DNA of 64,000 nt from Magallana gigas (GCF_963853765.1 NC_088859.1:33294001-33358000); one strand, 5' to 3'; shown: positions 37,001-45,700, numbered from the stretch's first letter. Notes: generated by a model from the sequence alone, not told the origin. Numbers and translations are program-made.

Positions 37001-39704
37001 CTCTGCTTTACAATTTTTAAGAAAACATTAATGTTAGCCACACTCTGTGAAAGCCATACTTCATGCATACCCAGTGATACTAATAATTCTCTGACATTAA
37101 AACACCATGTATTTGGTATCAATTGTGAAACCAATTCTTCATAAATATTGCGTAATGTACAATTTTCTGTTTTAATCAATTTCAACCAATACTTAATGAT
37201 GCGCAATTTACGAATAATACTCATGGGTAGACGACCTAACTCTGTATAAACCATGAAGTTTGACGTACATTTTTTAGCTTTCAAAATTCTTTTACAAAAG
37301 TTTGTGTGAACGCGTTCTATTTCATCACCAGAATGAAAACCCCATATTTCGGAGCCATAGTTAAGAACGCTAGATACATATGTATCAAAAATGCTTAGTT
37401 TAGTCTCAATATTTAAATAAGTTTCATTACACACCTTCTGAATACCAAACATACATTTTCTACCCTGCATTGCAATTGTTTTCTGTGTAACATAAAAATT
37501 CCCATTAAAATTAATGTTGATTCCTAAATAATTGAAACAATTAACAATCTCAACATGCTTTTGGTCATAAGTCCAAACATTATTTTTACACATTTTGCCC
37601 GCATGTCGAAAAACAACTATTTTTATTTTATCAGTGTTCACACCAATATTCCAATCATTACTAAATTGATACAGTTGAATCAACATACTCTGTAGACTCT
37701 CTCGTGAATTAGCTATTAACACAGTGTCATCAGCATACATTAAAAGAAAAAGCGAAAGGTCTCTTAAATCAACAGGTTCATAGCAACTTCGTATAAAATC
37801 CATTTCAAAATCATTAATATATAGTGAAAAAAGAAAAGGCGACAATGCCTCTCCTTGCATAAGTCTAGTTGTAGACGAAAAATAATTTGACAGTTCAGAC
37901 TTATACACATGTATTTAACACATGATTTTAACTCGTAATAAACATGCTTAATAATACTTAACAACTTTCCCGTGATTCCATTTGTGGCAAGTTTGTATAA
38001 TAGCTTGTTTCTATTCACACTATCAAACGCTTTTCTATAATCAACAAAACAACAATATAATTTCTTTTTCTTTTTCAAATACAAAGATACTAAACTCGTA
38101 CGTGCAAAAATGGCATCTGTGGTACTTTACCCTGGCTTAAACCCAAACTGCGCATCACTTATGATACCATTGTCGTCAGACCAACGAAGTAATCTATTGT
38201 TCAACACAGTGATAAATATTTTTGCTAGATTACTAACCAGAGTTATTCCCCTGTAGTTGTTTACATCATTGGTGTTACCTTTTTTAAAAAGTGGAATTAT
38301 TACACCCACGGACCAGCTCCTTGGGAAAGAACCTGCATCAAAAATTTTATTAAAAAGTCTAACTAAAACTGGCAGAAAAACTCTTTAAATTTAACAAAGT
38401 ATTCATTGAACAGATGATCTGTTCCAGCAGCTTTACCACATTTTAATTTTTTTAATACAGAAAGTAATTCCTCTTCGTCTATAGCTTTATCTAATTCACT
38501 AAAAACAACCTCAGTGCTCGCCTGCACAGAAAATTGACTTTCAATGTATACAGTATTTTCATCTACGTTACAAACACTCTTAAAATGTTGATAAAAAGCA
38601 TCTAAATCTAAAGTACTATTGTTTTTCTTTTCTTGAAAATTTTGTAAAACTGATGATTTAGATTGTGTTTTCTTAAATTGTTAAGTCTATTACCTTCGTG
38701 TCTGACAAACCTCGTTCTAGTTCTAAGTACATGCTTTTTGTAGACACGTTTGTTTTCACATAAAGTGATACGATTTTGAACAGACCTTTCCCAATTAAAA
38801 ATACGTAAGGAGCTTTTATATACTTTGCGGAGCTCTTTACACTTGTCATCGAAACATATCTTATTACTACTAGAAGACATTTTGTTAATAGACGAACCAC
38901 ATGGAAAGTTAGATACATTACAAATAAGCATAAAAACACTGTTTAATATACTAGTGAAATTATTCACAACCTGATCTATACTAAAGGTCCCACAGTCCAT
39001 TTTCTCTAAAAGACTGTAAAAATCAGACACTTTACTGTGTAAAATACATCTCATGGACTCAAAAGCTTCCTCATTCCATCTTAATACACTGCCAGCCGTT
39101 ACATTACAGCAGAAAAATGTTTTCATTGTTATATCATTGATAGCTTTTAACATTATGAATACACAATTCAACTAGAGCGTGGTCTGACCATTCATTAAAA
39201 TCTTTCACAGTAACACTCGATTGCATCAAAATTGTCTTTACTAACTAAAACATAATATATGACACTCTAACCTAAATGATTAAAAAATTAATAATTTGCC
39301 CCGAGTATCCCCAGAAACCCTGCCATTACATATTCTAAGACCAGAGGCTCGACATAGTTCGAGTAATCTACGACCAAAATTATTGACATGTTTGTCTTCC
39401 GATTTACGTGAACAAGTATAAATCCTTATCACATGACAAAAATGCTATTTATGATATTTAACAAATCGTTAGACAAAATATCAAATTCAACATAATCTTT
39501 TGATTCACCAACACGACTATTAAAATCTCCAGCTATTATAATAACACCCATATCAATGTACTTCGCAATATAGCATAACAGAGTGTCAAAAAGGTCAATA
39601 TCATAATTAATATAGAATACACTGTTTTCGTGTGCAATGTAGACGAAACAGATATAAACGTCATTTTTATAAATACCTGACAATTTTACCCAAAACGTCA
39701 CCAA

Positions 39705-39743
<39 letters not shown>

Positions 39744-42700
39744 TGATATTAATTTCATTTGCACATACAATATATCATACAATATATATATACATGTAAG
39801 TATATTTAGCACAATTGAAAAGTCTGTTGACAAGATCAATTTCAACAAATTTAAGGGAGAGAAAATGAGGGACAGTAGGAAGTGGAGAGTGGGGGGAGAG
39901 AGTGGGGGAATTATGAGGATACATGTATCATGTCAGAAATATTTTATTAATAATTAGGCGTAATCAAAATATTTACTACCGAGTTGTTGTATTCAGACAA
40001 GGTATATATAAATCGTGCCTTATGTAAATATGTCAATGGTCAGGATCTACATGTACATGAGAAAAAGCCAGTCAGTCCATTGGTTTAAGAAATTATTATA
40101 TTTGCCTTGTTTTGTTGCAGTGTATTTAAGTGTAGTTATATGGGTTTTGAGATCAATCAGAAGTTCTTGGATTGATAAGTTTTCCTGTAGACATCTTTTC
40201 CTGTATATGTAAGATTTGATTATAAGAAAAATTATACCCAAATAAATTGAATTAGGGGTTCCTAATATAAATGATTTTTCCTCTAATGTAATATGTAAAC
40301 CTTTTCCGTCACATATTGATATAAAGTGGCTTAAAAGATTTTGGACATGTAAACAGTCCCAAAACAGATGCACGATAGTTTCTTCATTACTTTGACATAA
40401 AGAACACAACTTTGTGTCAGTTTTACCTATTTTAAATAAAAATGAGTTTGTTGTCAAAATATACTGATTTATTCGAAATTGCAACCATTGCAATTTAGAA
40501 TCCTTGGTGTATAAAAAGGGAAATGTGAAGATATTTTCCCACTGCAGGTCTAAAATTTCAAAAAACTTTCCCCATTTTACTTTTCCAAGAGGAGTAATGT
40601 TTTCTGTAGTAAGAATATTGTAGATATGTTTTGTTCCTTTTTTGTTGTTACAAAATGTTTTAATATTATGAGGAAGAAACGGTCTAAGGCTATTTGTTCC
40701 AATTTGAATTTTTGAGCTTGAGAGACTTGCTTTAATTGAATTTCTAAGTGATGCATAATTCAGAAAATTTGTTTTTATCTTAATTTTTTTTTGTAAATCT
40801 TGTAAAGAATAAAAATTTCCATTTTCATCAAGCAAATCTGCTATGTATACTATGTTCTTATCAAACCAGTTTGTATAGAAAACTGTTTTATTTTCAATTT
40901 TGATTTTCGGGTTGTTCCAAATGGGCTGAGTAATAAATTCATCCCATGATTGAACTTCTAATTTTTCTTGAATTATTTGAAAGACAGTAAATGTATCTTT
41001 CCAGAAAGGATTTTTTATTTCCTTTTTAACAACATTAATATAGTCTGATCCAGTTTTTAATATTTTTTCTATAGATACAGTTTTGCCAAGCAGCACTTTC
41101 CATTTTGTTTCTTGGGAATAAAGAATTCTTTTTATCCATGATGATTTTAATCCCAGATTGTAATTGTTAATATCAAGCATTTTTAAACCTCCATTAATAT
41201 AGTCTTGCACTACTTGCTTTCTTTTAAGTTTATCTACTTTGGAATGCCATAAAAAATTAAAAAGAGTTTCATTCAGATTTTTCATGAAAGTATTTGATGG
41301 GGAGGGTAGAGAAATGAAGAGGTGATTTAATTGTGCAATAAGCAATGATTTTATAAGAGTTATTCTGCCAAGTGGAGTAAGTCGTCGTTTACTCCATTGA
41401 TTGATGATATGCTTGATTTTTACTAATTTCTTGTCATAATTAAGTTTTGGTATATTTGTTAAGTCCACATCAAAATATATACCTAAAAGTTTAAAGGTGC
41501 TTGTCCATTGAAAGTTCATTTCCTCACATATCATATTAGAAGAGTATTTTTTACTACCAATCCAGACAAGTTGAGTTTTTGATATATTTATTTTGAGACC
41601 AGAAATTTGATAAAAGTTATTCAACTCTCTAATTGCTTCTCTGAGAGACCTCTCACTGCCATCTAATATAATAAGGGTATCGTCTGCATATTGTGATAAC
41701 AAAAATTCTGAATTATCTATGTTAATACCATTTATACCTTTATTATTTTTTAATTTAATAGCTAGTACTTCAGCACATAGTAAAAAGATATATGATGAAA
41801 TTGGATCACCCTGACGACAACCACGCTCTAATTTAAAAAAGTTGGATAAGTAACCTGCTTGTGATACAGAGGAGGAGGTGTTTTGTTGAAAAACTGATAT
41901 CCATTTTCTGAGCGATGGACCAAAGTTAAAGAATTGAAGCGTTTTATCAATAAATTTCCATGAGACAGAGTCAAATGCCTTTTCAAAATCAATCATTAAC
42001 AGTAATCCAGGAATGTCATTATTCTCAGTATATTGCATTAAATCATAAACAAGACGAGTATTTTCACCTATATATCTTCCTGGAACAAAGCCATTTTGAT
42101 CGGTACTGATAATTGAACTGATTATTGTTTTCATTCTTTGAGCAATGCAGCCTGACCCTATTTTATAAACTACATTTAATAAAGAGATTGGCCTCCAATT
42201 TTTCATGTAAAATTTACTTTTTCCATCTTTTGGTATGCAGGTGATTATACCCTGCTTTTGTGTAACAGATAACTCCCCTAGATTGTATCCGTGATTTATT
42301 GATCTAATAACAAAGTCTCCTAAGTGTTTCCAAAAGACTTTAAAGAACTCTGTAGTGAAACCGTCACTTCCAGGACTCTTATTATTCGACATTTTTTTCA
42401 ATACATGAGAGGCTTCATTATAAGTTATTTCACCTTCAAGGGTATTTCTTTGAGTATCGCTTAATTTAAAAATTTCAGAGTCTGATTCTAGAATCTCATT
42501 TAAATCATAGTCTTGAAATTCACCCTTGTTTTGATATAGATTTCTATAATAATTTTCTATCTCTAACAGGATTTCCTTTTGTCCATTGATTTCTTCGGAA
42601 CAATCTTCTTTTATTAATTTTGGGACAATTTTATTTACAAAATTTCTATTCTCAAGATTAAGAAAGTAACTTGTTGGTTTCTCTCCTTCACAGGTCCATT

Positions 42701-45700
42701 TAGCTCTTGATCTTACTAGACTTCCCATAAGTTTGTGATTTCTGATATTTTCTAATTCTTTCTTTTTAAAATTAATTGTTTGAATGTTTTCTTCATACTT
42801 TTCCTCCAACTGTTTTATTTGGTTTATTAAAAATTTCTCCTTTTCGTTATTTTTCTTTTTGGCATAGCTAGAATATGATATACATTTGCCCCTGATTTCC
42901 ATTAATAGTGTTTCAAGAAAGAGCTGGTCATTGACAGTGAATTGAATTTCATCATTTGGAATTTTGTCAATAGATGCATTGTTATATACGGGTACTGCAT
43001 AATTTTGTTTTATTTCTTGTATTTTTTTATTAACAACATCTAGGAATTCCTTATCATATAAAAGTGCATTATTGAACTTCCATAAACCTTTTCCATGTGT
43101 AAATTCATTGAATTTTAGACTAAGGAGTACTGGTGAATGATCTGACTTATAACTTGCTATGATTTCACTTTCTTGTGACATACACAGTAGGGTGTTTGAT
43201 ATTAAAAAGAAATCTAGTCTTGCTTGTTTAAGAGGGGTTGGTTTACGCCATGTGTACCTTTTCTTATCAGGGTGAGTTTCTCTAAAAATATCAATAAGAT
43301 TGAATTGATTTATTTTTTCTATTACTTTATCTCTTGCTTTAGGATTGTTAAGATGAAGATAATTGTAATAATCCAAATCGGGATCCATAATAAGATTAAA
43401 ATCGCCAACAACTATTATGTCTTTATTTCCTATTTCACTTACAATTTCAAAGAGTTCTTCATAAAAAAGGGGCGTGTCCTCATTTGGACCATACACTGTG
43501 ATCAAACTTAAACGATGGCTTTGAATGCTGAGGTCTAGTACCACAAAATTTCCAGAATCATTTGTAAAATTCTTATGTACTTTATATTCAAAATTGTTAT
43601 TGAAAAAAATTGCTACTCCTCTGGACTTTGAGGTAAAAGAATTAAAATAAACTTCATTGCCCCATTCGTTTTGAATACTATCTTCCATATCACAAGTGAA
43701 ATGAGTGTCTTGTAAACATAAAATATTGCATTGGGTTTGTCGATAATATTGAAAGACATCTTTTCTTTTCTTAAATTCGTGCAGACCCTGACAGTTAGCA
43801 GATATAATTTTTACCGAAGACATGTTACAGAAAAAGTTTGCTTACCTTGTACGATTCGCTGGAAATACAACAACACGGTCAAAAAATGCTCTTGTCCAAT
43901 AATTATACTAGTCTGAGGTTGATACATGATTGAGAAAGGAAACATACAGAAGGGGGAAAGAAAAGGAGTGCTCGATTGCTGGGTTTAAAGTTAAAGGCAC
44001 GTGCTGATGTACGGTGAATTTGGTTGAGGGGTTGAATGTTTACATTGGATATGCCGACACGTTACTAAAATTAGAGTAAACAATGGTAGACATAAATATT
44101 TCCGGAATTAAATTATAGGCATAATCAGAATGAAAAGTCGGCATTTGAATTAATTAATGGGATCTTTTCATGTGTTTGAAAATACATATACAGGTTTTTT
44201 TTTTTCAAAATACGTAATTATAAAGACAAGTAATTCGGACATTGTCCTTAATAGTTTATAGTGTGAATGAGGAAAATTCAGTTATTTTCCGGCGTCACTT
44301 GGATCATCTAGTTTGTTAACAAGGTCACAAACCAAGTTTTCCATGATGGAAAAACGGGCTGGGCCAATGTGCGAGCGCCCCATCCATCGCGTCAAAACAA
44401 TTGCAACGTCGTTGATCCGATTGTCTTGGAGGTACCTTAGCATTCTCCGTCCTGCCCCATGCTCCCGATCGTCGTGGTAATTTTCGATAGTTTTTCCACT
44501 TTGGTCGCGAAACCTGTATACGAGGATTCTGCTGTCGCAACTTGCAGCGTAAGGGTCTATTGATGTTTTTTTGTAGATATTCAGGGCCTCGTCCGAGGAC
44601 TGAATATTAGCACCAACCGCCATAAATTCAGACCCGTCTTTCTGCACCGGTTCCGTGGAGACAACCACAACGTCGTCCAAGGACTGATATTCCTCAGAGG
44701 AAATTTGCAAGGCATCCGCACTGGAAATAAGGGGTACCTCTTCCTCGTATTTCGTACCGTTTGGCATTGTTATCTCGTTTCTTTGAACTTTAACGTTAAT
44801 GTTCTGCTTGCGAAATGAATCCGCTTTATCAAAAAGTTTATTTCTAGCGGAGGTAAGGGGTGCGGGCTGTTGGGGAGTGATGAAGAAGGGTAAACGCTGT
44901 TTTGCAATTTTTTTTAGCCTCTGCGCGTTGAGAATCTCATCCTTTTTATTGCGATCCTTCAACTTAGCGGTTATTGTGACCGGTTTGTCATTGAACTGTG
45001 GGCGGACCCCGTTCCTGTGGATGCGGACAAACTCAACATCGACACCCAGTGATTGCTTTATATCATTGGGTATCGCTGTGGCCAAGTCCTCTTGTTGGGT
45101 ATAAGGATAGTTGTGAATCAATATATTGTCTTTCATCGATCTCGAGCGAAGATCAGTTATGTCATCATCGATGTGTGACAGTTTTCTGTCCATTCTAATC
45201 ACAACCGACCGCAGGAGATCAAGTTCACGCTTAAGTTGAGCATTTTCGGAGCGCAAGGTTGTAATTTCGGTATAATTACACTCGGCCTGGTCCGATATGG
45301 TTTTTAGTTTGTCACATAACGGACCCTGGTCACGCTCTGCTGAATGTTCGGTTTGCTTGGCTTTGGGTGAACTGTTGTCAGAATTTTTTTTGGATATTCC
45401 TTTGTTTCGTGTTTCCATGTTTCAAACAAACCCAAGTTGAAATTCCTCTTTTTTCCAGTATATATCAATACAGAACACTATTTGACACACAGTAAACCAA
45501 AATAGAATCCCACTTTGTATCAAAGACACTCCAATAAAACCAAAATCACCAGGACCAAAAAATTTACGTGCTCATGGCCTCGGGTGTCACGTGACTTTTT
45601 TCGTCACCAACATAATTACAAACTGAAAAGTGGGCTAATACTTCGTCTCTAACCAGAATTACCATTCCACCCCTTTTGCCAATGGTACGTGGGTACATAA

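Follow-up and report, generated by a model that had tools for sequence, protein, structure and literature searches.

A LINE of the oyster Magallana gigas encodes an L1-type ORF1 protein with a C-terminal UPF0029 (IMPACT/YigZ) domain

Introduction

The open reading frame 1 (ORF1) proteins of long interspersed nuclear elements (LINEs) constitute the least understood part of retrotransposition, and their accessory domains reveal which host processes the elements need. We describe here a LINE on the minus strand of a 64,000-nucleotide stretch of the Magallana gigas genome (GCF_963853765.1 NC_088859.1:33294001-33358000; hereafter the window, to which coordinates refer unless stated otherwise), in which the ORF1 protein (ORF1p) ends in a UPF0029 domain of the kind present in IMPACT/Yih1 and YigZ. 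To our knowledge, UPF0029 is not among the known modules of LINE ORF1s. The accessory domains described in these proteins include esterase and PHD domains, CCHC knuckles and extra RRMs (Metcalfe & Casane 2014, PMC4120745).

UPF0029 is an ancient domain, the function and partners of which have been called 'elusive' (PMC4503747). Its invariant residues are grouped on one face, suggesting a conserved binding partner, and the eukaryotic proteins Yih1 and IMPACT associate with ribosomes, actin and Gcn1 and inhibit GCN2 by competing for Gcn1 via their RWD domain (PMC4503747). As for YigZ, a correction notice to a Cell paper from 2025 states in its figure legends, without giving a mechanism, that the protein is needed for E. 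coli gut colonisation. A sequence-only reading of the window had placed a domain of this type at 44315-44675, corresponding to ORF1p residues ~249-368, and had suggested that it is a captured module which may aid ribonucleoprotein (RNP) or ribosome association, or blunt the translational stress response to retrotransposition.

Results

Domain composition of the ORF1 protein

ORF1p is a complete L1-type ORF1p with an additional UPF0029 domain at its C-terminus. The reading frame and its parts are the following.

44282..45418, minus strand: ORF1, 378 aa, intact; L1-type ORF1p with UPF0029
45137..45322, minus strand: long single helix, ORF1p residues 33-94 (DSSP on the model; aligns with the coiled-coil part of 2yko/2ykp)
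44906..45133, minus strand: RRM, residues 96-171 (fold alignment to L1 ORF1p)
44735..44905, minus strand: domain like the C-terminal domain (CTD) of L1 ORF1p, residues 172-228 (2yko_B on model residues 55-227; 2ldy, RRM-CTD, on 96-227)
44297..44671, minus strand: UPF0029 (IMPACT 'ancient' / YigZ N-terminal domain), residues 250-374 (Pfam and fold; compact alpha/beta domain)

The Pfam family PF01205 (UPF0029) matched ORF1p residues 262-363 with E=1e-15 and 58.1 bits against a cut-off of 27, and it was likewise matched in all 19 aligned relatives, with a best E of 1.4e-24. When ORF1p was searched with phmmer against all PDB sequences, yeast Yih1 (6bqi) was found at E=1e-10 with the whole protein and at 1.5e-11 with the domain alone, and a 19-sequence profile of the ORF1 family improved this to 7.2e-19. 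The bacterial TTHA1053 reached E=0.18 with the same profile and gave no match in the single-sequence search. As Yih1 is so far ahead of TTHA1053, the domain is by sequence of the eukaryotic IMPACT type.

An AlphaFold2 model of ORF1p was built on alignment A1 (mean pLDDT 86, pTM 0.73), with secondary structure assigned by DSSP. In the model a disordered N-terminus (residues 1-31) precedes the long helix, which is taken as a coiled coil by analogy, and two short helices form a linker of ~24 residues between the CTD and UPF0029. Residues 33-228 share the fold of human L1 ORF1p in the same order, coiled coil, RRM and CTD, whereas the C-terminal part has the fold of the YigZ N-terminal domain. The matches of the model to PDB structures (match score; A / residues; model residues) were:

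2cve (TT1547): 14.7; 2.4 A / 114; 251-374
1vi7 (YigZ): 14.0; 2.8 A / 120; 250-374
6bqi (Yih1): 9.7; 4.2 A / 121; 246-373
2w7a (L1 ORF1p RRM): 10.2; 2.3 A / 84; 97-183
2yko_B (L1 ORF1p trimer): 9.8; 4.9 A / 161; 55-227
2ykp_A (L1 ORF1p trimer): 10.2; 4.0 A / 174; 51-315

The Pfam family Transposase_22 had no match in the window ORF1p (E<=1) or in the 19 relatives (E<=0.01), and judged from the model the kinship with L1 ORF1p is visible at the fold level only. For the C-terminal domain, on the other hand, profile and fold agree, which bears out the identification made in the sequence-only reading; the strings quoted in that reading lie within the final ~125 residues of ORF1p.

The RWD domain (PF05773), which that reading had held to be missing, was indeed found neither in ORF1p (E<=1) nor in any of the 19 relatives (E<=0.01), while every true IMPACT recovered in the profile search had PF05773 together with PF01205. 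DUF1949 had no Pfam match either, and ORF1p stops 4-8 residues past UPF0029. These results bear on the idea that ORF1p acts as a mimic of IMPACT, dampening GCN2/eIF2alpha signalling so that translation persists during retrotransposition. The eukaryotic type of the domain, with the family profile matching Yih1 so much better than TTHA1053, would fit such a role, as would the inhibition of GCN2 by IMPACT/Yih1 (PMC4503747). However, the competition for Gcn1 needs RWD (PMC4503747), and because this part is absent a blunting of GCN2 is unlikely; the suggestion of a dampened stress response is thereby weakened, and we consider the mimic improbable.

Structure of the element

The element belongs to the L1 superfamily of LINEs; it is full-length, ends in a poly(A) tail and was inserted recently. 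It extends over 39707-45601 on the minus strand (~5.9 kb), as delimited by the point where identity to a second copy stops at the 5' end, by the poly(A) tail and by matching target-site duplications (TSDs), and both ORF1 and ORF2 are intact. In addition to ORF1, the features are, from 5' to 3':

45602..45612, minus strand: 5' TSD TGTTGGTGACG, read directly; within the endonuclease region of an older LINE
45419..45601, minus strand: 5' untranslated region (UTR); 5' end of the element at ~45598-45601
43824..44281, minus strand: inter-ORF spacer, 458 nt, between ORF1 and ORF2
40047..43823, minus strand: ORF2, 1258 aa, intact; matches Pfam domains and human L1 ORF2p
39707..40046, minus strand: 3' UTR, with AATAAA at 39739-39744 and a 35-nt poly(A) tail at 39707-39741, read directly
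39696..39706, minus strand: 3' TSD TGTTGGTGACG, the same 11 bases as the 5' copy, after the poly(A) tail

ORF2 contains an APE endonuclease (residues 1-236), a reverse transcriptase (RT; 530-783) and a zf-RVT-like C-terminus (1110-1161) according to Pfam, and it matches human L1 ORF2p (9k6g) at E=2.4e-93 across residues 2-889. The hallmarks of the L1 superfamily, an ORF2 with APE and RT akin to L1 ORF2p, a poly(A) tail and TSDs, are thus all present. A survey of bivalve transposable elements (TEs) lists Tx1 as the sole clade of the L1 superfamily, with 14 Repbase L1-Tx1 entries for C. gigas (PMC10294476); since no other clade of the superfamily is listed there, the LINE probably belongs to Tx1.

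The second genomic copy (L002, G000:C4) is 99.68% identical to the window copy (L001) over 2815 bp. The identity ends at 45598, marking the 5' end of the element, and the two copies share 5' UTR, ORF1, spacer and ORF2. This is relevant to the possibility that ORF1 is a domesticated host chimera of ORF1 and IMPACT which adjoins the ORF2 of a LINE by chance. Genome annotations do list ORF1-UPF0029 as a gene, and the GC content (2-kb bins, 40001-46000) is 0.43 in the ORF1 bin, exceeding the 0.29-0.31 over ORF2. Yet the TSDs and the poly(A) tail enclose ORF1 and ORF2 as a single unit, the nearly identical L002 has the same composition, and the family is multi-copy and includes decayed copies with stop codons, so that we give a host gene next to no credence.

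The insertion lies in an older, unrelated LINE, the endonuclease frame of which resumes beyond it. On the minus strand at 45613-46100 the end of an ORF1-like frame is followed by the start of an APE endonuclease (99-aa ORF at 45564..45863), and this frame picks up again after the 3' TSD, from 39695 downward (39000-39695), with stops.

Copies in the oyster genome and homologues in other species

In a tblastn search of the whole genome ORF1p had 112 matches with identities between 100% and 23%, of which many are full-length and stop-free. PF01205 was matched above its cut-off 86 times; two of these matches fall on exons of the host's IMPACT, leaving at least 84 UPF0029 segments borne by LINEs, and for 24 of the 86 the surrounding frame is free of stops over >=379 aa. 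Thirty loci were read as sequence, while the most diverged copies of the genome are known from the search tables. In the 30 loci ORF1-UPF0029 is followed after ~390-850 nt by an APE-containing ORF2 wherever the flank suffices, and the identity of ORF2 to the window drops in parallel with that of ORF1 (100/100, 65/65, 51/58-61, 40/42, 42/30), reaching 25-30% at the lowest. Long spacers of this size recur across diverged subfamilies and species (L004, L008, L016, L022-L024, L034, L035). Locus L031 (protein P0052) had no recognisable ORF2 in the 3.4 kb downstream and may be a decayed or truncated copy.

Beside these copies, ORF1-like frames of 345-370 aa were seen among the tblastn matches (for example C2:47756146, C9:21971404, C6:14309955 and C5:16158422) which align solely to residues ~11-224, that is coiled coil, RRM and CTD, with 25-29% identity. 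Going by these alignments, they may represent sister LINE families that do not have UPF0029.

Named homologues of ORF1p come from Saccostrea, Crassostrea virginica, Ostrea edulis, Magallana gigas and Pinctada imbricata, and are thus limited to Ostreidae and Pinctada. Database proteins under Magallana gigas names are 93-100% identical to parts of ORF1p, and the homologues are annotated as 'protein IMPACT homolog', 'IMPACT-like' or uncharacterised. In Pinctada (L034), ORF1 is followed by a related but frameshifted ORF2.

To reach further, 1.84 billion cluster representatives were searched with a profile built from 19 full-length ORF1s, and 517 of them matched at E<=1e-30. Among the 150 best representatives 117 had near-complete RRM-CTD and UPF0029, always in this order and with a median linker of 24 residues. 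Most of the representatives are just 20-30% identical to the window ORF1p and fall into three large groups, and the representatives of these distant groups are 28-36% identical to the best copy in the oyster genome. An ORF2 of the composition APE-RT-(zf-RVT) was located downstream of ORF1 on the contigs of P0196 (L035), P0142, P0210 (L032) and P0177 (L036), which are members of two of the large groups and two further distant members, and the same layout was seen on a Logan contig. L035, a 7.4-kb scaffold of an ENA assembly, terminates in a poly(A) run. The Atlas clusters bearing the fusion are labelled Mollusca, and the AFDB fold search gave a full-length alignment for two entries only, both named 'IMPACT-like protein'.

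In 17 of the 117 distant fusion proteins (P0177, P0192, P0183, P0172, P0110, P0160, P0142 and others) a tail of 60-157 residues extends past UPF0029, and the 11 tails that were read are low-complexity, disordered-looking and acidic or S/T/P/Q-rich. In the ESM Atlas, an annelid-labelled cluster of 415-aa proteins aligns over 252 residues to the ORF1p model (TM 0.53) and has a NADAR domain (PF08719) in all members; these proteins may be a further case of an ORF1 that has captured a host domain.

The fusion is therefore found well beyond one copy, in at least 84 genome segments and in other genera, and it stands beside an endonuclease-RT ORF2 where this is visible. Related full-length elements were not found to be without UPF0029 as a rule. 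In this large, old element family the fused ORF1p represents the ancestral state, kept by selection.

These data also concern the view that the domain is a neutral passenger, a functionless piece of host IMPACT caught in one copy or in a young subfamily. Host sequence is at times transduced by LINEs or recombines with them, and public databases name the proteins 'IMPACT-like' or 'protein IMPACT homolog'. In contrast, dozens of subfamilies that diverged deeply, as well as other genera, carry the domain, always in frame, in constant order and beside ORF2. The host IMPACT gene, the sole cellular-looking UPF0029 locus in the genome search, lies apart at C3 ~49.675 Mb (G000:C3:49675093-49676487) and is divided by introns into separate exons, with PF01205 matches at C3:49675117-49676451; compared with scallop IMPACT, its exons show 67-71% identity and the LINE copies 27-46%. 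With these observations a passenger is very improbable.

Selection on the domain and its origin

Substitution rates were estimated by NG86, and because dS between subfamilies is saturated (undefined), dN and within-pair counts are given. Between subfamilies dN was 0.27-0.64 for UPF0029, 0.24-0.69 for RRM and 0.34-0.88 for CTD, and UPF0029 was below CTD in 6 of the 7 pairs. Two copies of the same subfamily (L004 and L005) differed by dS=0.033 and dN=0 over 337 codons. With dS saturated, dN close to that of RRM and dN of zero within the pair, the domain is not evolving neutrally, and selective constraint on UPF0029 is, by the codon comparisons, as strong as on RRM. A passenger would not be expected to keep dN as low as that of RRM at saturated dS. 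Both this reading and that of a host gene are contradicted by the family-wide fusion, the constraint and the TSD-bounded unit.

The residues invariant in IMPACT were followed across 157 non-redundant LINE domains. R355 was kept in 99%, G352 in 98%, D317 in 97%, R344 in 94%, A294 and Y301 in 87%, F356 and E319 in 86%, F265 in 85% and H296 in 83%, and the loop motifs of the domain (S.F; A.H...YR; DDGE.GAG; R..GG..LG..RF) were kept at 70-99% across the family. The window copy retains S263, F265, Y301, R302, D316/D317, E319, R344, G352, R355 and F356, but has Ser at position 296 and Arg at position 318.

A maximum-likelihood tree of the 157 LINE and 15 IMPACT domains, which includes LINE and cellular IMPACT domains only and is unrooted with respect to YigZ, split the two sets by one branch (SH-aLRT 99). 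Such a split is consistent with the domain having been captured once and then inherited vertically in the element lineage. In BLAST comparisons of 195 LINE domains with 87 IMPACT domains no preference for bivalve IMPACT was seen. The proposal of a captured module is thus supported as far as a single branch fits capture, while the comparisons point to no donor lineage.

Transcription of the element

ORF1 sequence was contained in 20 public runs. Contigs from two RNA-seq libraries of one study covered nearly the whole element with few differences, and one contig of 1794 bases ran from inside ORF2 through the spacer to the UPF0029-coding part of ORF1. When 1% of a poly(A) RNA-seq run was sampled, 389 reads matched at >=97% identity, most of them on ORF2, with a strand bias compatible with sense transcripts. 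The RNA data agree with transcription of the element, short of proof.

Discussion

The analysis supports two things jointly and close to certainty, the anatomy of the element and the selective maintenance of UPF0029 in its ORF1p. What the domain does for the element is a matter of lower confidence. RNP or ribosome association, which the sequence-only reading had already named, is in our judgement the most plausible role. ORF1p would coat the element RNA, presumably forming a trimer through its coiled coil as L1 ORF1p does, and the UPF0029 domains would be displayed on the surface of the RNP. There they could dock a conserved partner of the translation or RNA machinery, which may be the ribosome, a ribosome-bound factor or RNA itself, and the docking could aid the cis-loading of ORF1p on its own mRNA, or the translation of ORF2 across the long inter-ORF spacer. 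Docking is favoured because the invariant residues are grouped on one face and because Yih1/IMPACT are found in association with ribosomes, actin and Gcn1 (PMC4503747). Taken as a whole, the explanation consisting of LINE anatomy, selected fusion, coated RNP and docking seems to us slightly better than even, whereas the identification of UPF0029 as a docking module towards the translation or RNA machinery is, by itself, a tentative one, possible rather than probable. The more specific version, that UPF0029 was captured once by the L1/Tx1 lineage and tethers ORF1p to the ribosome by which its own mRNA is translated, is doubtful as it stands.

The chief alternative is that, instead of serving simple docking, UPF0029 has retained an enzymatic or small-ligand-binding activity that the element uses, with RNA ends, tRNA or nucleotides as conceivable targets. 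No activity has been assigned to the domain in the literature covered here (PMC4503747). The window subfamily, moreover, has replaced two conserved positions, with Ser for His296 (44531-44533) and Arg for Gly318 (44465-44467), yet its ORFs are intact, it has near-identical copies and its evolution is constrained. His296 is present in 100% of the sampled IMPACTs, Gly318 is the conserved Gly of the DDGE motif, and both are retained in other oyster subfamilies. A binding scaffold would accommodate constraint despite these losses more readily than strict catalysis would, and we regard a retained activity as unlikely.

Several points weigh against docking and the scheme built on it. The same two replacements mean that the ancestral site may be modified in the window subfamily. 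No biochemical function or partner has been established for UPF0029 (PMC4503747), and the regions of Yih1 that suffice for binding ribosome, actin and Gcn1 map over the linker region (PMC4503747), therefore ribosome binding is not established for the ancient domain itself. The trimerisation of ORF1p is assumed from L1 ORF1p, and the placement in Tx1 comes from the survey and the Repbase listings instead of a reference phylogeny. Raw poly(A) read depth over ORF1 is only 0-2.5; the contigs from RNA libraries may include DNA, and the reads can stem from related copies.

Neither the fusion nor any other association of UPF0029 with retrotransposons was found in the papers of the searched literature, in agreement with the expectation that it had not been described, and it is unmentioned in papers on bivalve TEs, on gastropod non-LTR (long terminal repeat) elements and on L1 across 503 genomes. 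ORF1-UPF0029 sequences are already in public databases, under misleading IMPACT names. Annotations of oyster and pearl oyster mislabel transposon proteins as IMPACT in this way, which inflates the apparent IMPACT family. The element family preserves, under strong selection, a domain that is found in all domains of life and has an 'elusive' function, and it places UPF0029 in a defined context, within an RNA-coating protein and beside a translated bicistronic mRNA, which can guide work on IMPACT and YigZ. If the docking proposed here is true, a ribosome tether would secure cis-preference, ORF2 translation across the long spacer, or both, and the family would be a natural gain-of-function context in which the function of the YigZ/IMPACT domain is directly testable.

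Compared with known systems, the oyster ORF1p shares the arrangement of coiled coil, RRM and CTD (type II ORF1) with human L1 ORF1p (2yko, 2w7a, 2ldy), but adds a UPF0029 domain of ~125 residues past the CTD and does not match Transposase_22 at E<=1, and the inter-ORF spacer of the element, 458 nt, is much longer than in L1. The C-terminal domain is homologous to that of IMPACT/Yih1 by sequence, with the single-sequence and profile matches given above, and by fold, and the LINE family keeps most of the IMPACT-invariant residues. In contrast to IMPACT/Yih1, the RWD domain and the acidic linker are replaced by an RNA-binding ORF1p, and the gene is intronless and multi-copy; the LINE domains stand apart from all sampled cellular IMPACTs, with the invariant His and one Gly lost in the window subfamily. 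The YigZ family (1vi7 of E. coli; 2cve, Thermus TT1547) combines UPF0029 with DUF1949, which the oyster ORF1p does not have, and the sequence likeness is marginal, appearing with the profile and not with a single sequence. Modular ORF1s are a known phenomenon, and the oyster protein follows the same principle as the accessory domains of other LINE ORF1s, in which modular proteins gain host-derived domains, with UPF0029 as a new module for the catalogue of ORF1 architectures.

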